From: Schmidtea nova
Lineage: Eukaryota
Assembly (NCBI GenBank): GCA_044892505.1
Contig: CM097882.1
Location: forward strand, 488,436,001 to 488,500,000
DNA: 64,000 nt
Reading direction: 5' to 3'
This document shows positions 198 through 61,700 of this stretch, piece by piece. A model generated the notes under the pieces. The model did no database searches. It was not told the origin of the DNA and worked only from the letters and a program-made list of their open reading frames with translations. A program made the position numbers and the translations under genes. Within the stretch, counting starts at the first letter, position 1, and each line of letters opens with the position of its first letter.

Positions 198-3100
198 TTA
201 TATTTGATTTGTTTTATTGGAATGTATAAATCTGTAATTTTTTGAGCACAAAAATGAATTTTTATTACATTTCATTTCGAATATTTAATTAGAATACTTT
301 TTTTGGTGAATACAGCAATGCCAGTCGAGTTCCTTCTTACATAAAAATGTTTTATGTTTTTAACCGTGATAAATTATACAAATTACAAAACCAAATACCT
401 GTTGATCTTCATCCTGCCATGGAAGGATTAAAATTATATCGTCTTTATGTAAATCTAATTCATCATCATCTTGTTTTGCGTAATTGTACCTGACAATGAC
501 TTGTTGGCGAAACTGGTTAAGATAATTTGTATCGTAATATTCATCTGAATTCAGAGACATTGAAACCCTTTTATTGGCGGACTTCTTAAAATTCGAGCGA
601 TATGATTGAGGTGATGAATTACTATGAGAAGATTTGTTGTTGTCCTTAGCAATCTTGTGGTAGAGATGTCGACTATTCTCCAAGTCCACGTCACTTTCTA
701 ATTCAGAATTAATAGGCGGTGACGGCCTCATTATGACAGGCTAAAATACCGAATTAGAAAGATATTTAATTTTTAGGAGGCAAGAGAAAGAAATAATTAA
801 GATTTTATTAGAAAAATATTCTATTATTTTTATATTCAGATAATTCAAGTTTACCCATTTACCATTTATTTATTATATTTACCCATTTATTAAAAGGTTC
901 TACATCACTGAACCAAATGAATAATTTCTAATTTTACACAAATTTATGTACATTTCTTTTCAAGTGTAGCCGATCAAGTGTAGTCCCTTACCAAAAGTGG
1001 AAATAAAGACAGGATGTAGACATCGCTTTTTTATGTGTAACCCTCTCGCTCTACTCATTTCAACCATCGCTGTAGGAATTCTATAAAAGCATTGTTGAAG
1101 AAATTCGGAATTTATCCTTCAAAAACTTCTTGATTGCGCTCTTAAATCATCGGCGCTAGAAAATGACTTCCCTTTCAGATGATTCTTTAAATTTTGTAAA
1201 AGGTAGCAGTCTCTAGAATGGAGATTGCGACTCAAAGAATGGCGCTCAATAAGTGTCAAGCCAGTTTGCTCAATTCTGGCAACAGTGGCATTGTAATGCG
1301 AAAATCTGTTTTCTACTTTTTTTCTGGCTGTTTTTTACAAGGTAGCACTCGATATTTATCTTTACTGATTTATCAACAAAGTCTATGCGCACAATGCCCG
1401 TTCTATCCCCAAAATTGCAATCATGAGCATTCAGCGATAGAAAGTTGCTAGTCTCAACTTAACTGGCGGTTTTCACTATAATTCAAAAGCATCTTTTTTG
1501 TACTCATATGTATATATATATATGTGTGTGTATATATATATATATATATTTAAAAAGTTTTAATAACTTTTTTGTCAAAAACTTAACATCCTTTATTTTG
1601 TTCATCTTTGCTCTTAGTTTCCATTACTACGATTGCTGGACACAGTTAAATTTAGATATTCTTCCATAATAACTTAATAAAATACAAATTACCTAAGTTT
1701 ATTTATAATATTCAAATAACTGAGAAATTTTTAATTTTGGCATTCCTACGAATATCGCCACATTACACTTAACTTTTTCGCTGCTCAAACCGTACATAAT
1801 CGTAAAATGAAAGTGTGGCTCACGCGCTCCTAGTGAGTTAACTCACACCGTGTTTTTAAATTGTTCCCTGCTCAACACGACTATTCATACTGGGTACCCC
1901 CAACAAGTCAAGTACCTACGGGTAAGTTAAATGTAAAAGAGGCAATGCGGCGCTTTTAGTATAGTAAAATACTAATTTTGATCATATATGTACACGAATA
2001 AGCTCGTAATCACCGAAATATGTGCGCACAGCGGGCACTAAACCTCAAAGTGTGTTGCGCAGTAAAATGGTTAATTAATTTCAATAGGAATATGCAAAAT
2101 TTAATTAGTTAACACTAGAACTACTAGGATTGATTGTATACCTAGTTTTACCACATCCACATCCACATTACTTAAATCGAAAATGAAAATAAATTTTTAA
2201 TTATATATAATGCCAAATTAAAAGTCAACATAAATTCTTATCATAATGCGTATAAAATGTTAATAAAAAAATTAAATAATTAATTTAATTAGTTTAATTA
2301 TTTTTAATCACTAAATCATCGTAAAATCGTAATTAGTTTTTATTAAAAAGAAAATTTGAAACTCCTTGCGAAAATAAAACCACAAAATATGTTTAAAGAT
2401 GACATAAAATGCATTTTATATTTTTAAAAAAGCAATTTAATTATATTTACCGATGGGCGTTCAAGGGAGCTGGGATTTGTATTGAATGAAAGCCTTTTAA
2501 TAATTGGTTCTCTTTTCTCTATCGAATATGTGGAGCTGGCGCTGTCACTCGCGAAGGTTTGATTGAGTGTCTGTCGATATCTTTTGTTAAAATAAATAAA
2601 TAAAATAATCAAAATTTTACTTCGATTGATGTCTTCCCAGGATTTACTAAAAACCCTTTCGAATCGAGCAAACCGGAATCTATTCGGTCGTAGGTCTGTG
2701 AGAAATGTATGGGATAAATAAATGAAATCTAATTGAAAAATATTAATAACCTCAGAAAAATGTTTTTCGCTGATCTTGTTGTTTTTTACATCGTTTTCAC
2801 TGTTATTATTTAATTTTATCGTTCCGTTTGTTATCTAATTTAATATTTTATATAAAGCAAGTCATAATAAATTATAAATTTTTAATAACCTCAGTTGGTT
2901 TTATTTCTATTTTTTCTGTATCTCTTTTCTGATTAACAGATTCGGAAATTTTGGGGTTCTAGCATTCAAATGATAACGAACGAAATAATATATAATTAAT
3001 AACCTCTGATGTCAGATGTGAATTGGTACTGCTCCTCTTGTCACTAATGGCATATGTGTCTAAATTCTATGGAACAAATGAAATCGAAGTTAAACCTCTA

Positions 3101-16039: not shown

Positions 16040-19000
16040 AATTAATATATCAAATACCGATATCTGTCCATCCGTTGCTACCGACATATTATTTTATATA
16101 AATTCAAAAACATGTGACTGCTATTTGACGTCATTATATACAGAGGCAATTCTAAGGGGCGTCGCACATAGAGCCCGCCAGAGGCCACATCCAAAACTAA
16201 AACTATTAGCAAAAAAATTTGCAATTGTCGATAACACCAAAAAAAAAGAAAGACAAATATCTCGTCATTCTTTGTCAGTCAAATGTAATTTAGAAAGTCT
16301 TTTATTATTTTTTTCAAATGTTTTGCTTTTTGTTTACTAGAATATATCGTTATATTACGGATGTCAAATGTCATTAAAAATTTGCTTTTTTTCATTAAAT
16401 ATTTATTAATATTGTTTTGTTTTTTTCTTTTTTTTTAAATATATGATAAAAATACTTAGGCTGTCTAATAAGTTCCCGGAATATGTCATGCACACACACA
16501 TGCATACATATATACACGTAAATATTGTATTAGAATGAAGCCACCAATCAACTGCTTTGGCCAATCATACAGTCAAACTTTTATCCACTGTCTTCTCACT
16601 GTGACAGCCCATTATTTCTGCTAACACAGAGTACTGTGCACCGTTGACTCATTATGGATTTACAGAAAGAACATTTTCGTGCATACATTTACTTAGAAAT
16701 GCAACGCGGACGTAAAGCATGTGAAATATATCAGCAACTACAAGATACTCATCTGCATGTTCCTTCACAGACAACTGTATTCGAGTGGTACAAACGATTT
16801 AAAGAGGGAAGGCAATCTCTTGATGATGATCCAAGATGCGGGCGCCCAACCACGTCTTCAACCGCTGAAAATGTGCAGACTATCAAAGCTATTCTGGATG
16901 AAGAACCAAGGATATCTCTTAGAGCAGTGAGTGAATCGATTGGCTTGTCTAAAGATACTGTTAGACACATTTTTACAAATCAGCTTGGATTGCGAAAGAT
17001 CTGTTCCACATGGATTCCACATCACCTCTCAGAAGCGAACAAACGTGACAGGATTTTGTGTGCACAAAGCATCATCACCATATTTGAAAACCAGTCCATT
17101 GATTATTTGTTACACCATTGGGCGACAGAGGATGAGAGTTGGTTTCTGTATGAAACAGCACTGACGAAACAGCAGAATCAGGCATGGCGTCATCCCACAG
17201 AACCAAAACTCACTGTTGTCCGCCCAAAGCTCACAAACAAGAAAACTCTTCTCTTGCTGGCATTCACTGGTGATCAGAAGATAAGTGCAGACATTTGCTC
17301 TCCTGGACAGACTCTGAACTCAGAGCGTTATGTGGAATTTGTTCGTTCAACTGGGGAAAAATGGCGACATGTTCGCAGACATCCTAAAAAACTCACTGAA
17401 TTGTTGTGGCAACACGACAACGCACGCCCTCACACATCAAAAGAAACAATGGAATTCTTTCAGCATCGTGGAGTGACACTCATCAAACAAAGCCCCTATA
17501 GCCCTGACATGAATCAGTGTGATCGTTGGGTTTTCAAACACCTTAAACATTCATTTCGAGGGCAGAAATTCGTGGATGGTGATGAGGTGAAAGGAAGAGC
17601 GGTGCAGCTGCTCCGCGGTCTCACTGAAGAGAAGTTCCGTCAAGAATTGTTATCATTGTATGAACATTGTAAACTCGTTGTAATTAATCATGGTAATTAT
17701 GTAGTTTAAATGTAATATAGAAATGTTTGAAATTTTTCATACAAGTCAGTTTTTTTTTAACAATTCCGGGAACTTATTAGACAGCCCAAGTAAATCAAGG
17801 ATATTTTTTATTTGTAGAGACCATTTAATTTACAGGTTAAAGGCCCAATTTTTTTAACCGCCAGTGGCCCTGGCACAGTTAAAACCCCCTCTGATTATAT
17901 AGCTAGCCTTTAAAAAATATTATTGGATAATAATAAATTGATACTATCTATAACTACTAAACTCAAAAAAGTTGGCTTCTAGAGCTTTTCAAATATTTTT
18001 AAATTTTGAATTAATTAAAATTTAATTAATAAACTATTAAATGAAAACGATAATTTATTCAGGGTGCCAGGGATTCAGAGACAGAATGAGTCATTCTTTC
18101 CGCTATTCTTTTTTCCTTAGTGAATATGAGTTAACTTTCCAAGTGATTTTTGACATTTCGATGTTTCAGAAATGAACATGATCACAAAGGTGCTCTAGCA
18201 CGCAGTCCTCTATAGCACAGTTGTGATCATGGTCAAATTTAAATCATGAAAGTACCAGAAATCAATATGTCACTTATTGCATATTCACTACAATAAAACC
18301 AGAAATCTTGTCAACGGTGTCCATCAGAGAAGATCTGTATCATTTTTCAACGCTCAAAATCACAATTGCTTGATGTTAATCAGATAACAATTTATATTTT
18401 TATTACGTATATGTGATTATTGTGCAGTCTTGGTTTGACTATCAACCTTGCTAGTGTGTTTTTCTTTGCATGACATCATTCAAATTGAACACAACCCGTT
18501 ATCTAATCAATCGGCAATGAGTAAATAAACATAACCTTATTTTATGATCAGTCCATCGGCACTTTTTACAGGTTTGATTCTTTAGGTTTTACTTTATAAT
18601 GTATACCATCAACATCACCATAAACCGTTGAATTTGATTAGAGACTGATATTTTACAAGTTTATGCGTAGATTATTTTTCTTTTTTTCTGTGCGTTCAAT
18701 CTTTGTTTCTTTCTTTTTTGTTTCTATTCTTTTTCTCCCATTTATAAAATGATAATCTTGTCTATTCATTAGAAAGGTATATCTTTCATAAATGACAATT
18801 TTCAATTCTTTTGCATAGTGGTCTTTATACTTTTGATAAACAATTATAAATATTTTACTATACTACGCAACTAAATGTTTATGAATTTCTTACATGATAC
18901 AGGTGAGAGGCAAATAAACTCAAAACATGTATCCTATTAGAAATCACGTCGATTATCCTATTAGAAATCACGTCGATTATTACATTAAAAACTTAATTTT

Positions 19001-32303: not shown

Positions 32304-33435
32304 CAGGCGCCTCGAACACGCGGCCCGCAAAGACTTTTTAATAAATTACCAAAAAGAGTTTATAATTTGAAATTCAAATTAATTAAATAACAAGAACTGC
32401 ATAACGCAGTTAAAAATCAAGTTTTTAAATTGATTTTTTTTAATTAAAAGCATGACTTAATTAATGCTTATTAAAGAGAAACTTTAGAAAATTATAATAT
32501 TTTTAGTTTAAAATTTGACTCAAACAAAGCATCATCAAAGATTATAATAAAAATATTTGATCATTGTTGTAAATTTTAACGAATTATCCGTATTCAATAA
32601 TTTATACTCAATTTTTTTCAATAGTTCCAAACAAAAGAAATAATATATAAAATGCCTATGAAAAAGAAATCAAAAATGAATGTTGAGTTAAAAACAGATA
32701 TGGTGGCATTAAAAAGAAAAATTGAAGATGAAAACAGAAAGTTTCAAGACAAGTGGAAAGATATGTATTTTTTTATTGAAACAAAGGACCGAATTGTGTG
32801 TCTTATTTGTCAGCAAACAATTGCGGTCGCAAAAGAGTTCAATCTTAGTCGCCACTATAACACACTTCATGGCAACAAATTCAACAAGTTCCATGGAAAA
32901 TTAAGAGAAGAGAAAATTATTCAGTTCAAATCATCATTTGAAAAACAAACAAGTTTTTTCTCCAAGTGCAATAAAGTCAGTGAAGATTCTGTCAAAGCAA
33001 GCTATGTTCTCTGTGAAATGATAGCAAAAGCATCCAAACCTTTTACAGAAGGACTTTTTGTCAAAGAATGCATGGTACAAGCCTACGAAATAATGTGCCC
33101 TGAAAAGAAGAAAGTGTTTGAGGGAATAAGCCTATCTGCTAATGCAGTTTCTGCTCGAATTTCTGAGTTAGCAGATGACACAAAAAAACAACTTATCAAT
33201 ATCCCTAAACCTTTTGAAGCATATTCCATAGCTATTGATGAGAGCACAGACACAACTGACACAGCCAAATGTGCAGTCTTCATTAGAGGTGTTGACAAAC
33301 ATTTAATGATTACTGAGGAATTGCTAGAATTAATACCTTTGAAGGGCACAAACACAGAAAAATTATGTTGCAGCCCACCGGATCAGGATACTAGTCTAAT
33401 GCGGCCCGCAGGCCAGTTTAAGTTTGAGACCCCTG
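32304..33435 (+). mobile_element. hAT-Charlie/SPIN (GTF2IRD2-like) element, internally deleted
   Basis: TIRs CAGGCGCCTCGAAC / GTTTGAGACCCCTG; exact TSD GTTTAGAC at 32296-303 and 33436-43; GCGGCCCGC subterminal motifs. Confidence 0.92.
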
Positions 33436-33473
33436 GTTTAGACGGTATTTTAAAACTATGCAAAATAGATTAG
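32652..33473 (+). pseudogene. N-terminal half of a SPIN/GTF2IRD2-like transposase (open but truncated)
   Basis: ENRKFQDKW...CLICQQ...NLSRHY; SLSANAVSARISELA; YSIAIDESTD. The ORF reads through the 3' TIR after the deletion. Confidence 0.85.
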
Positions 33474-36519: not shown

Positions 36520-39500
36520 CAAAGGCGTCTTTAGAAATTTGTCGCCCCTGTGATATAAAATATAATGCGCCCCTAAAAAAACAATTTTTACAAAAATATA
36601 TTATGTTTATTAATAATATTACACATTATTGCATATACATATATTAATATTATATATTACATCATTTTATTTCAATGACTAGGTTAACAAACGAACAAAA
36701 AAACAATAAAAAAATAATATTAAATTAACATTAGCTTACAAAAATTCAACAGTCTAATGTTTTCTTTAAACAAAAAAATTAAGAAAAAAATAAATTTCTT
36801 TCAAACATAAATATCAAAATATAACATTAAATAGAATTAATATGTATAATGAAGAAAAACGATTACAATATTTTTTTCTTTCTAGATTTATGTCTTGCAA
36901 AACTATCAACTATTTCTTCACAGTCAATACTTTCAAAATATTCAGACTCAATGGCTAATATACTTAAATTATTAAATTTTTCTTGTCGCAAGAAAGAACG
37001 AAGATGATTTTTTAATCTTTTTAGAAGCGAAAAAGATCTTTCACCTGAACAGTTAGTTAATCCTATACTCATAAATATTCTTAACGTAATTTCTATGTTT
37101 GGAAAAGTGGATCCGATATCAGACTCAATTATTGTTTTTAAAATAATTTCTGATTGTGAATTTTCAGTACCAGTTTTGTTATGGACAGTAAAATTTTTAA
37201 AATATAGGCATTCTTCAATTTAACTTTTATCTAGATCGTTCGTGTATATTTCACATAATTTAGAGGCTTTCTCCTTGATTTCAGTATCATCTAAATTTTT
37301 TAAATCGAAAATAAATCCGAATTTTAAATATATTTCATCATAACTACATTTTCTTTTATTTATTTCTAGGAGAAGTTTATCAAGAATTACGTAATATGAA
37401 TTTATACGAAAATTCGTATCACTACAAAAAAAATGATCTGGTGTACTACTTTCGTCGAATTGTTTTTTTCTTTTATGTTGCCTAGTTGTTTTAAAATCTT
37501 GGCACCCAGTTATTAAAATTCTTTCTTTTTATAAAAATTGAAAAACTCTAACTCTCGTTTGCTCTGCAGAAATACATTTAAACTATTATATATTTTAACA
37601 CCTACTTCAATGTTTATTTCAACTTTTTGAAGTGTTTTACTTGCCCCATTAATTGCATTTAATATAACGAACCAAAATGATAGCATTATACCGGTTTCAA
37701 GAAAATTTAATTGTTTTATTAGTCCCTGGGCTTCTATTTTTTCAACTGGTTTTTTCGTTATATCATTAATAATGTTTTGTAGTGCCTTTTTAAAAGACTC
37801 ATATTCTAATTTAAGTGCTTTAACTGCATCCGCTCTAGCAGACCACCGAGTATCACATATTCTTTTTGGAACAAGGCCTTTTGGTCCTATCTCCTTTTTT
37901 TAATAATTCCCACCTAGACGTGGACACCGAAAAAAAAGTGTACAAATTTTGTACAAGCATAAATAGTTTAGTCGCTTCTTGACAACATTCTGTTGAGCTT
38001 TCACCAATTACATTTAACGAATGTGCAGCACATGGAACATAAATTGCAAATTCATTTTTGGCTCTAATACGAGCTTGCAGACCATTATAGACTCCCGACA
38101 TATTAGCAGCATTGTCATAAGATTGCCCTTGACAATCTTGTAAATTTATACCGAAGTTAGACAATGTTTTAATAACTGATTCCTCCATTTCGAAGCTCTT
38201 ATGACCAGTGTTATCTAAAAAGCACAAAAATCTTTCTACCGGAATTCCATCTCTTTTCACATATCTAATAATTATCGCTTATTGGTCTACATGTGAAATA
38301 TCAGGAGTATAATATTTTGCTTCTTTCAATTCTGTGATTATTTTGCTTCTCACATAACATCCCAAGATTTCTATGAATTCATCGCAAATATGTGCTGATA
38401 AATAGGACACATATCCCTTTCCTCTATTTCCATACTCTCTTAGATGCTGTTGAAGCAATGGGTCAAATTTAGCTAAAAGTTCTAAAGAACCTAAATAATT
38501 GCCATTTAATTTATTTCTTAATATCTGATTTTTACCCCTAAATGGAAGTCCCTGGAACTTAGAAACTTTATTACTTCAACTATTCTTGTCAAAATATTTT
38601 TCCAATATCTAATATTTTTAATTTCTTCAGCTTTAAAACTTTGCCTAATACTGGATGTATCATTTAAATTATTTACAAAAATTAGTGTATTATTTTTATG
38701 ATTAACTGAATTCTCATGGTCCGACAATAAATTTGGATGACTCCAATCATTAAAACCTAAAGTGAGACTATTTGTAATAGTTCCAAATAGTTTGCAAAAA
38801 GCACAAAAAAATTTTCCTGTAGATTTAGAAAACCTAACCCAGTTTCTTTTTTTTAATTCACCGTTTACTAATTTCCTATAATATAAATTTTTACTTGCAA
38901 ACCGGTTTTTATTTTTATAAATTATTTTCGAGCTAGAAAAATCTAATTTGCTTACATCTACATCCTTTAAATTACTAATTATTTTGTTTCTTTTTTTGGA
39001 ATTTATATCACCCCAATTTGCGGGGTCTTCGTAATTTACTTGCTCACTACATCCTTCTGAGATAACGTTTGCTGCTCCAGAATTGTTTTCATTATCTATT
39101 GATTCTTCATCAACAGCTGTTATTACACTTATGTTTTGATTTTCCAGCATTTGTTGCGGCTCATTTTCAATTGGTGCAATTGAATTATTTACATCATCAG
39201 TGACTTTAAACAAAGTTTTTAATGTTGGCGTTTTTTCCAATATAGATTTGTCCTTTAATCTTTTTGTTGCATTTAGTTTTCGTCTAGCACATCCGGATAA
39301 TTTTTTCTTTTCCATTTTTATTTTACAAGGGTATCTTTAAAAAAATGTAAAGTTATAAATTGTAATAAAAAATATATTCTTTTCACCTTTTATTTCAAAA
39401 TTAATTCGTAAATGTAGATAACTAGATTATTACAAAATTTTCTTCTCAATTTTTTAAAGTTTTAAAACTTATAAACAAAAATGTCAAAAAATAATAATTA

Positions 39501-57876: not shown

Positions 57877-58728
57877 TTATTTACAAATATTCAAAGCGAA
57901 ACAAGCTTCTTTGGCCGCTTTCTGCTTTGCATCAGATCTGGTACAATTTTCTTTGTTTTGAAAATATAAATCATTCACAAAAACTTCAAAAACAAAATCT
58001 TGATTAAATTTATTATTAATCACTGTGTAAATGGGAGGTTTCAGTTTTTTACTTTGACAAAACATATTTAAAACTGAAATATAATCAACAAATGGTTCTG
58101 ATTGCCTTCCGATGTCAAATTCCTGAAAATTTTCCATAACATTTTCTTCCATATTTTCAATCATATCATTAGGTAGAAATGATTTATCGATTTTATGAAT
58201 ACCTCTCGACAATTTATCTGCAATAAATAACTCATCACTCAAATGGGAACTGTCTTTCAGGAAATTAGTATTGATATTGAAATATCCCAAATTAATAAAC
58301 AACTTCACAAATAAATTACTATATAATTTGTCATCAAAACCACAAATAGAATTTAATTCATAATTTAAAGCTAATTGATTTTCAGTTGCTAAAGAATATT
58401 TATGCAATAACTTATTAACTTTAGGAGAAAGATTTAAATATACCGCATCTTCAGTTACGGATTTATTGTCATTGTAAATTTGCAAACATTCTACATCTTG
58501 GAAAGACAAATTTTGTTTATTTAATAAAAATTTAACCCATAAAAATCCATAAGATATGCTAAGCAATTCCAATGCCATAATTGGAATATCAAATTTAAAT
58601 GTTTTACCTAATTTTTCTGAGCAATAAAATTTGGATTTTTCATTTATTTTTGCTACACATCCTATTCCATAAATAGGCGATACATCTGTCCATAATTTCA
58701 CTTTGATATAATTACTAAAATGTTTCAT
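57877..58728 (-). CDS. Intronless RNase H-like (DIRS/retroelement type) plus dsRNA-binding domain protein, 283 aa
   Basis: WTDVS..GIG (D15), I..LELLSI (E54), IYNDN (D87), IADKLSR (D171); residues 215-281 DYISVLNMFCQ...PPIY...F.FEVFVN...RSDAKQKAAKEAC.AL follow the dsRBD consensus. No stops. Confidence 0.78.
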   Translation of the reverse strand: MKHFSNYIKVKLWTDVSPIYGIGCVAKINEKSKFYCSEKLGKTFKFDIPIMALELLSISYGFLWVKFLLNKQNLSFQDVECLQIYNDNKSVTEDAVYLNLSPKVNKLLHKYSLATENQLALNYELNSICGFDDKLYSNLFVKLFINLGYFNINTNFLKDSSHLSDELFIADKLSRGIHKIDKSFLPNDMIENMEENVMENFQEFDIGRQSEPFVDYISVLNMFCQSKKLKPPIYTVINNKFNQDFVFEVFVNDLYFQNKENCTRSDAKQKAAKEACFALNICK

Positions 58729-61700
58729 TTAAAAAAATCATGATTAAAAACAAAATAATTATCTTTTAATATTTAAAATTGGATAAACAAAGGATTATCT
58801 CACTAAATTTGTTTGATAAAGCCTTTTTAAAATTTTTTTCTAATTAAAATAAATTTATTATTTTAAATATAAAATTTCTATATAAAAATGAAACGTAAGT
58901 AATACATTATTTGGCTGACAGGAGAGTAATTTTTTATTTGTTTAAACGCGTCGGCAATACACAAGTACTGCTCAAAAGTTAATTTAAAATTCATGATAAT
59001 ACCAAAAAATCCAAAGTAAGATGGATAAGCACGAAAAAATAAAATATTAAAACTCAAAAGGTAGCAAGCGTAGTGTTAGGCAAAAATTAAACCCAACAAG
59101 TTCTTGTTTAATCGCAGTAGTAACACAGCACGTAAAAATCGCGCACGAATTGAATTTATTATCTTTTATGTATTCTCTATTATGTATTAGTGTCGTTATA
59201 AATTAAAATTTAGACATGAGAGAAGCTCATCTATTGGATAGGTTAAAGATGAAGGAGCCCAGAGCAATGGATGCGTCAGTAGTTGATCTAATGCTGAACT
59301 GCACAATTACATTATCATGGTGGGTTGCTGATCGTTAATATGACATTGACATTGTTATGGCTCGCATCAACAACTCAACATACAAAACATTAGTTTGACT
59401 ATATTTGTTGCCCATCACTATGTAAGGTTGGTAATGCAACAAATAGGTGGATGTCCGCAAACAGAGAGCGTCGAAAAATTCGAAACTATGATTGACCGAA
59501 CATCTCCTGGGTTCAAGGGCTACCGATAGAAGGTTTAATGCCAACTTTTGTCCCTTATTCGACATTTTATCTACAAGCATTCAATAAGATTTTTAATCGA
59601 CCATTCAAATAAATAATCAATATCAATACAATTTATTAACATCAAATTAAACTATATTATTCAAAAATAATGTCTAAGTAAATGTATCCCAGCCATATGC
59701 AAAACAAAATAAATTCAATCATTTCGAAAAGTTTGTGTAAGCGTTCCTGTTTTGATTATCCAGTCTTAAATTCAAGTCGGGTATCGATCAAAGAGATCAG
59801 CGAAGCTTTCAGATAACTTTCCCCTCGATTTTTCCCGATCAAAATCTAAAGCATAATAAAATTACTTACTTCATCTAACCGCCATATACCATATTATCCA
59901 AAGACACTAGCATTTTCGCACATTTATTTTATTCACAAGCTCGTATTCAAATATACCATCGTAACTCAATTCGGGGATCAAATATTCCTTTAGCAACACA
60001 TATATTCGGGGTATTCGATCGCGGTTATTTTGGTCTAAACGATTATTATTTTCGTGATTTTTTAAATTCCTATATTTTTAATGTAAAAATTTAGCTAAAT
60101 TTTATGTATATCCTATTCCTAGTGTCTCTTTTGCTCTATAAATTATAATAAAATTTTTATTATTAAAAATTTAACATTAAATTTTTTAAATTTTGCCGAG
60201 TCGGTAGTCATTGACAACGGATTAAGATTTATAAATTTTTTTGATCGGTTGATATCGTTATTACCTCTTTCCCATATATTGAAATTTCTATGAACAAATT
60301 AAACTATTTTAGGGCCTACCAGAAAACTTGAAGACCTCTCTCTTCCACTGTCGTAAATAAAATACTCTATATGGAATTTTGAAAGTCATTTAGAAAATCA
60401 CCTCCTCAACGCTGATTGGTCCAAATTCATTATTTTAAGCTTTACATTACTGCTTAGACTATTGATTTGTATGCGTTTCTATTTTTAGGCTTTATGAGTT
60501 TTTATAGTTCAACATTAATAGTCCGGGTAAATATTTTCTTTTCTTTTTTTTATTTTAATTTATTCCTTCAAATTCATTTAGACATTTTACGATCCTTAAG
60601 CTCAAATTTCAGGAGGTGGCAATTGTTGCAATTTATTGTTGTTGTTCTTTCTTAGTGCAATAAAGTTTCTCTCATTCGAGGATATTTTGATTTATCGTCG
60701 GAAACTTTTTTGTCCGAAAATTTTGATACAGTAAATTTACTCCGTTATTTTTTCGGAGACTTTTCTTAAGGATGGACAACTTTCCCTTCCAGTGATTTCT
60801 AACCAACGGAGCTAATGATTTTATCTTATAGTAAAAACCGAGATCCTTGGAGCTAAAAGGAAATCATTTACAAAGGTTGGATATATTAGAAAGCCTTCGC
60901 CAAATTTCTTTTCCTGTCGTTTGAGATTCAATCTTTTAAGACGGCTCTATTTGAGGAAAAGGAGTTGCGACGTATTTTCCTTTTTAGATTGACATTTTAT
61001 ATTTATCTTTGCCTGTTGGTATTTTATGTTAAAGTTTGTCAATTAAATAAAATTTGTGTCAGTACTTCCCTTGTTAATTGTTAATAAATTTAATGGATGA
61101 AAATATGAATTATAATATGAATGAGTTTTAAGGGTGAGGTTAAATGATAGGATTTGAATTTGGTGTTTTATGAAGTAGTTAATAGGAAATTAAATTCACC
61201 AGTTATCAATTAATAAATTAATTTTTCTAAATATGGTAGCTCACTCGAATGGTCTTAATGACTGAAACAATAAATATTTTATATAATCTAATCCATTCTA
61301 ATTTGTGTTATCAATTGCAAATAGAGTAGTTAGGTTATGGGATGTTATTGGGTCTAATGATTAGCTTAATTTCAAATATAAATTAATGAAATTTTACATG
61401 AAGTTTTATTTGGATGTAACATGCTACATAGGTAACCTAAATAAATGAAACAATTGACTTAACTAAAAATGGGTGTGCAGATTTTATGTAGCTTTTTCTG
61501 GGTATGCTATTGATATGGATGATGATTGTTGGTTGAAATGATTTAATTAATTGTGAATATGGATGTTGTGAGATGCAAGCCATTTATGTTAGCGGGTGTT
61601 GTGATTTTTCAATGAATTTGTACATGGAATGTTGTATCTGCAAGTTGATGATTATAGATATTTTTATCAATGAAATGGCTAATTCTCCATGTGGAGCGTA

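Follow-up and report, generated by a model that had tools for sequence, protein, structure and literature searches.

RNases H that carry an N-terminal domain for binding RNA:DNA hybrids or duplexes are known both from eukaryotes (RNase H1) and from bacteria (the type 1 enzymes), as reviewed in PMC9719913, citing Tadokoro et al. (2007). The same review records that the archaeal RNase HI of Sulfolobus tokodaii cleaves double-stranded RNA (dsRNA). This study concerns a gene of Schmidtea nova that may extend this pairing of a nuclease with a duplex binder. It lies in a stretch of 64,000 nucleotides (GenBank assembly GCA_044892505.1, contig CM097882.1, positions 488,436,001 to 488,500,000 of the forward strand), here referred to as the window, and coordinates are counted from the first nucleotide of that stretch. 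At 57877-58728 on the minus strand, to which all coordinates of the gene and its parts refer, the listing of open reading frames (ORFs) gives an ATG-to-stop frame of 283 codons plus stop. A preliminary description of the window, made from the sequence alone, had pointed out this ORF of 283 amino acids (aa) without giving its strand. With moderate confidence, we read it as a single-exon, selectively maintained gene whose product, here called the window protein, consists of an N-terminal RNase H-type nuclease, a flexible acidic linker and a C-terminal dsRNA-binding domain (dsRBD).

Comparison with a relative provides much of the evidence. When 1.84 billion representative proteins were searched exhaustively with HMMER, the sole full-length relative to emerge was P0001 (291 aa, 35% identity, E = 7e-50); four other matches cover the dsRBD only. 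P0001 is encoded on a single 1054-base contig from the Logan assembly of a public sequencing run, where its ORF stands alone between short non-coding flanks, with in-frame stops upstream. Identity between the two proteins is 32-40% over residues 1-185, 22% over the linker and 46% over the dsRBD, a conservation pattern that is that of two domains. The N-terminal domain (residues 1-185; 58174..58728), which is 34% identical to P0001 overall, is conserved along its whole length, and this points to a constraint of its own. The acidic linker (residues 186-214; 58087..58173) is the least conserved part and has little predicted secondary structure.

The C-terminal dsRBD (residues 216-276; 57901..58083), which the preliminary description had recognised, is genuine and is hereby confirmed. 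The Pfam family dsrm (PF00035) matches residues 216-276 with 29.3 bits, above its curated cut-off of 23, and P0001 reaches 28.6 bits against the same cut-off. A profile built from the two proteins matches the dsRBDs of PKR, RNA helicase A and Staufen among the sequences of the PDB, and Foldseek aligns about 60 residues of the model with solved dsRBDs at TM scores (template modelling scores, on the target) of 0.65-0.72 and root mean square deviations (rmsd) of 2-3 Å, at a local pLDDT (predicted local distance difference test) of only 44-50. The predicted elements, namely, a helix at 216-226, three strands and a helix at 264-278, follow the alpha-beta-beta-beta-alpha order. The same description had called the domain one without the His loop and with a degenerate basic motif, and this holds for both members: loop 2 lacks a His in either protein, and in the basic motif that opens helix 2 the first and the last basic residue are retained and the middle one is not. 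The Glu of helix 1 is present in P0001 and absent from the window protein, which therefore does not have the full canonical set of RNA contacts (helix 1 Glu, His in loop 2, Lys-rich start of helix 2). The missing residues bear on the strength of binding, not on membership of the dsRBD family.

For the N-terminal domain, the evidence lies in four acidic residues and their register. The preliminary description had named four motifs, which were found as quoted, i.e., TDVS (D15), LELL (E54), DN (D87) and ADKLSR (D171). The four acidic residues had thus been picked from one sequence, before P0001 was found, and all four proved invariant in P0001, whereas no more than 6 of all 24 acidic residues within positions 1-200 are; by our own calculation, the hypergeometric probability that all four chosen residues are invariant is about 0.0014. 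Of the four blocks with the highest conservation, one (10-18, the most conserved of all) contains D15 and another (169-177) contains D171, and three of the four residues are in or adjoin the top blocks. As a comparator independent of the query, an alignment of 81 RNase HI sequences was assembled from the rnhA gene of Escherichia coli (NC_000913, an accession used together with rnhA in published papers) and 80 proteobacterial RNase HI genes. The best local alignment by hhalign pairs D15 with D10 and E54 with E48 of RNase HI, and the extended, unconstrained alignment adds the pairs D87-D70 and D171-D134, which completes the E. coli RNase HI tetrad in collinear order; the global mode, with only 2 aligned columns, was uninformative. 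When the columns of the query were shuffled 150 times, an invariant identical residue fell on none of the catalytic sites in 95 shuffles, on one in 51 and on two in 4, and no shuffle placed three or four. In this alignment, the window protein shows a DEDD tetrad like that of type 1 RNases H, in collinear order and with compatible spacing. The proposed catalytic residues are D15 (first Asp; 58684..58686) at the end of predicted strand 1, E54 (Glu; 58567..58569) at the start of predicted helix A, D87 (second Asp; 58468..58470) at the end of predicted strand 4, and D171 (third Asp; 58216..58218) in the last predicted helix of the domain.

The RNase H fold comprises a five-stranded mixed sheet flanked by helices. 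In the low-confidence model of the window protein, the predicted order is strand, strand, long helix, strand and helices, followed by helix-strand-strand-strand-helix, which is compatible with an RNase H core preceding a dsRBD.

Several results weigh against an RNase H-type nuclease tethered by a dsRBD. The fifth strand expected of an RNase H core is absent from the model just described. The hhalign score against RNase HI is not significant (P = 0.13), with 15 of the 150 shuffles scoring equal or higher, and no RNase H sequence profile matches the domain significantly. Residues 1-185 were without a match in Pfam, NCBIfam, PHROGs, PADLOC and the PDB sequences, at E values up to 10. The AlphaFold models reach a pLDDT of 30.6 from the single sequence and 37.0 from the two-sequence alignment, values too low for the N-terminal fold to be read from them, and Foldseek searches of the PDB and BFVD with these models, both of them unreliable, returned matches to dsRBDs only and no RNase H fold; the long Foldseek alignments, at an rmsd above 15 Å, are meaningless. 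The family has only two members, so that all conservation statistics come from one pair, and the dsRBD, lacking part of the usual RNA-contact residues, may bind duplexes weakly. The preliminary assignment of the domain to RNase H thus stands as far as the four residues are concerned, being invariant and collinear with the DEDD tetrad, and finds no backing from profile, PDB or structure matches. By its catalytic register, at which level only the likeness is supported, the N-terminal domain can be called RNase H-like, not a proven member of the fold.

These same results leave a minor yet appreciable possibility that the N-terminal domain is an unrelated orphan fold and that the protein is a dsRBD adaptor which binds RNA or a partner protein without cleaving anything. 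The failure to match any library, PDB sequence or fold, the RNase HI profile-profile score within the range of shuffles and the low confidence of the models are all in line with such an adaptor. It would, however, have to accommodate four residues, named in advance, that are invariant and fall in register with the RNase HI tetrad, an outcome that no shuffle came close to, as well as conservation over the full length of the N-terminal domain, i.e., a constraint separate from that on the dsRBD.

If the domain is indeed an RNase H-type nuclease, the protein could work as follows. The carboxylates of D15, E54, D87 and D171 would be positioned to bind two metal ions. The dsRBD would dock on an A-form duplex (dsRNA or an RNA:DNA hybrid), and by way of the acidic linker this docking would hold the catalytic domain on its substrate, where it would hydrolyse an RNA strand. 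The dsRBD would in this way do the job of the hybrid-binding domain of cellular RNase H1, with the order of the domains reversed and an unrelated binding fold. Both substrates have precedent, because duplex- and hybrid-binding RNases H as well as a dsRNA-cleaving RNase HI are on record (PMC9719913). As to the biological role, transposon defence and anti-RNAi (RNAi = RNA interference) activity are matters of speculation.

The locus was also assessed for signs of mobile-element ancestry, since the preliminary description had likened the motifs to those of DIRS, Ty3 and pararetroviral Pol proteins. Any likeness to retroelement RNases H (Ty3/gypsy, Bel/Pao, DIRS, pararetroviral Pol) would lie in the short-motif style around the acidic residues. 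The Pfam families RT_RNaseH, RT_RNaseH_2 and RNase_H, in contrast, do not match the window protein, and no Pol protein is among the HMMER matches. The reverse transcriptase (RT)-associated RNase H remnant that is resident in the window (RT_RNaseH) shows no similarity to the N-terminal domain either (hhalign, P = 0.55). An origin from such a Pol is therefore not supported by these comparisons, none of which used a DIRS-specific profile, and a retroelement origin of the gene is unproven. Around the ORF, no long terminal repeat (LTR) or terminal inverted repeat (TIR) was found, and neither flank recurs elsewhere in the window. Upstream on the same strand, the pieces as far as 63.5 kb gave no Pfam match and no RT remnant; the closest such remnant lies on the opposite strand, at a distance of more than 7 kb. 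The gene, of which the window holds one copy, thus does not lie downstream of an RT inside a terminal-repeat element. A recent capture from a resident element was considered and rejected, as a profile of the N-terminal domain searched against six-frame pieces of the window matched the gene itself only.

We accordingly consider it rather unlikely that the gene, instead of being one of the host's own, is an accessory gene or Pol remnant of a so far unrecognised mobile element or of a virus-derived segment integrated into the genome. Such an affiliation would suit a window dense with transposon remains, a family that is extremely rare and patchy, and the retroelement-like style of the motifs. Against it stand the single copy with unique flanks and no LTR or TIR, the lack of RT or further Pol remnants in the same-strand upstream sequence, the dissimilarity of the domain both to the resident remnant and to every Pol among the 1.84 billion representatives, the absence of the family from the viral and metagenome contigs scanned, and P0001, which stands alone on a contig of about 1 kb with short untranslated flanks. 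The gene looks like a member of a rare, undescribed nuclease family and not like a piece of a retroelement.

The comparison of the two loci also bears on whether the coding sequence is complete. The window protein and P0001 begin with identical residues, and their C-terminal ends differ by a few residues only. An in-frame stop codon lies immediately 5' of the ATG of the 283-aa ORF, as in-frame stops do upstream of P0001. This shared start and end, with stops upstream, speaks for a coding sequence that is complete and lacks hidden 5' exons, and together with the 35% identity it argues for purifying selection on that sequence. At this level of protein identity, synonymous sites are saturated. 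Most likely, judging from the sequences, the gene is complete, consists of a single exon and has been kept open by selection. The preliminary claims of a stand-alone, intronless gene were thereby supported, there being no RT, gag, LTR or TIR alongside and the same start and end in P0001. That the ORF instead forms the last exon of a longer, spliced gene, which would make the architecture seen here incomplete, is highly improbable: a possible splice acceptor does occur a few codons past the ATG, but P0001 begins with the same residues at an ATG of its own, in-frame stops lie just upstream at both loci, and the same-strand sequence upstream holds no recognisable coding piece. The uninterrupted frame noted in the preliminary description was likewise borne out, and the chance that it is an accidental open frame or a very recent functionless pseudogene is practically negligible, given a full-length relative of 35% identity with the same length and domain pattern and given its 283 codons, about twice the length of any open frame in 30 shuffled windows (longest frame, mean 119 and maximum 145 codons).

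The family itself is small and counts two members, against 15 billion proteins catalogued. No member beyond P0001 emerged from word-indexed searches with the protein, with the pair alignment and with the N-terminal alignment, scans of viral and metagenome contigs with the family pattern gave no match, and none of the ORFs of the window is present in the protein collection. A third protein, P0004 (L002-L005), was considered as a member and rejected, as it has in common with the window protein only the end of the linker and the dsRBD, with no N-terminal domain upstream on its contigs. P0004, a protein of 117 aa with no domain but the dsRBD, resembles the window protein in this domain and in the linker before it (33% across residues 163-281). 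The contigs that encode it, assembled from four separate sequencing runs, are 1032-1044 bases long and have near-identical ends, which suggests a transcript. P0004 may be a relative of the family that has been truncated or that consists of the dsRBD only.

Elsewhere, the window is AT-rich (G+C of about 20-37% in 2-kb steps) and contains five runs of N, none of them near the 283-aa gene. A patch at 59200-59600, immediately upstream of the gene, is higher in G+C and carries a same-strand ORF of 81 aa without a Pfam match. A scan for bacterial promoters and terminators yielded nothing, which is irrelevant to a eukaryotic locus. The preliminary description had held nearly all other element-derived ORFs to be decayed. 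The window is indeed full of remnants, but its longest open frame, an ORF of 351 aa at 16654-17709 on the plus strand with Mos1-type helix-turn-helix domains and a DDE transposase region (mariner/Tc1 type), is open as well. At about 9.4-12.1 kb, on both strands, there are a zinc-knuckle gag ORF, a piece of an aspartic protease, RT pieces and an RT_RNaseH piece; because these pieces lie on different strands, more than one decayed LTR-type element is represented. At about 42-51 kb, decayed RT pieces occur near 42 kb and near 50 kb, together with a decayed DUF1759 piece of Bel/Pao type near 47 kb and two of the runs of N. Taken by itself, this mix of element remains would suggest an animal genome, probably that of an arthropod. 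Two ORFs, at 32652-33473 (plus strand) and 37853-38260 (minus strand), show a zinc finger of Spin-doc type and a DUF4371 tail, domains that are both typical of animal genes derived from hAT-like transposases. At the window edge, a 123-aa ORF at 360-731 (minus strand) with a partial SH3 match slightly below the Pfam cut-off may be an exon of a host gene.

In literature, profile and structure searches, no description was found of a protein in which a canonical dsrm domain follows an RNase H-type catalytic domain. If the N-terminal domain is an active RNase H-type nuclease, the gene would pair the recognition module of RNase III and RNAi with RNase H chemistry, and would offer animal cells, or a resident element, another route by which duplex RNA or hybrids are destroyed. 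If it is not a nuclease, an orphan dsRBD protein of modest interest remains. A wider proposal would see here an undescribed animal nuclease family, in which a highly diverged RNase H-type domain is joined to a C-terminal canonical dsRBD in a single-exon host gene, and which cleaves dsRNA or RNA:DNA hybrids of transposons or viruses as an effector of immunity or genome defence, separate from Dicer/Argonaute and from RNase H1/H2; we consider this wider proposal unlikely. The finding of just two such proteins in so large a collection illustrates how much the catalogues miss.

Among known systems, RNase H1 and the bacterial type 1 RNases H come closest in logic. They too link a DEDD-type catalytic domain to a small binder of A-form duplexes, and the tethering likely follows the same principle. 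In these enzymes, however, the binding domain is N-terminal, whereas the window protein starts with the catalytic-type domain (D15), has no N-terminal hybrid-binding domain and carries a canonical dsrm domain at its C-terminus. The N-terminal binding domain of RNase H1 has a fold different from that of the dsrm dsRBD. The catalytic domain of the window protein is, moreover, too diverged to be detected by Pfam RNase_H. The archaeal RNase HI of S. tokodaii resembles the protein in another respect, as it indicates that an RNase H-type site can cut dsRNA, the substrate that a dsRBD would normally select; it consists of one domain only, has no dsRBD, and was not found to be related in sequence to the window protein.

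The domain order is matched by the RNase III family (bacterial RNase III, Drosha and Dicer), in which a nuclease domain is followed by a C-terminal dsRBD, and bacterial RNase III enzymes (P0002 and P0005) are among the best sequence matches of the dsRBD. The similarity is confined to this domain, however: TIGR02191 is matched only at its own positions 129-216 of 219, i.e., at its dsRBD end, with 24.8 bits against a cut-off of 166, and no RNase III catalytic domain was found in residues 1-185, the Pfam scan giving only dsrm and DND1_DSRM. A further parallel is P0003 from the scallop Ylistrum balloti (XP_060079738.1; 633 aa), with an RNase_T (DEDD) exonuclease domain and two C-terminal dsrm domains, thus an animal nuclease of the wider RNase H-like superfamily followed by dsRBDs; its catalytic domain, unlike that of the window protein, is recognised by Pfam, and the two proteins are similar in the dsRBD only. 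Foldseek also listed giant-virus proteins annotated as 3'-5' exonucleases that apparently bear dsRBDs. Fusions of nucleases with dsRBDs outside RNase III may be commoner than is usually assumed. A nuclease held on its substrate by a duplex tether is, then, a familiar logic, and it is the combination, the order of the domains and the family that appear to be new.
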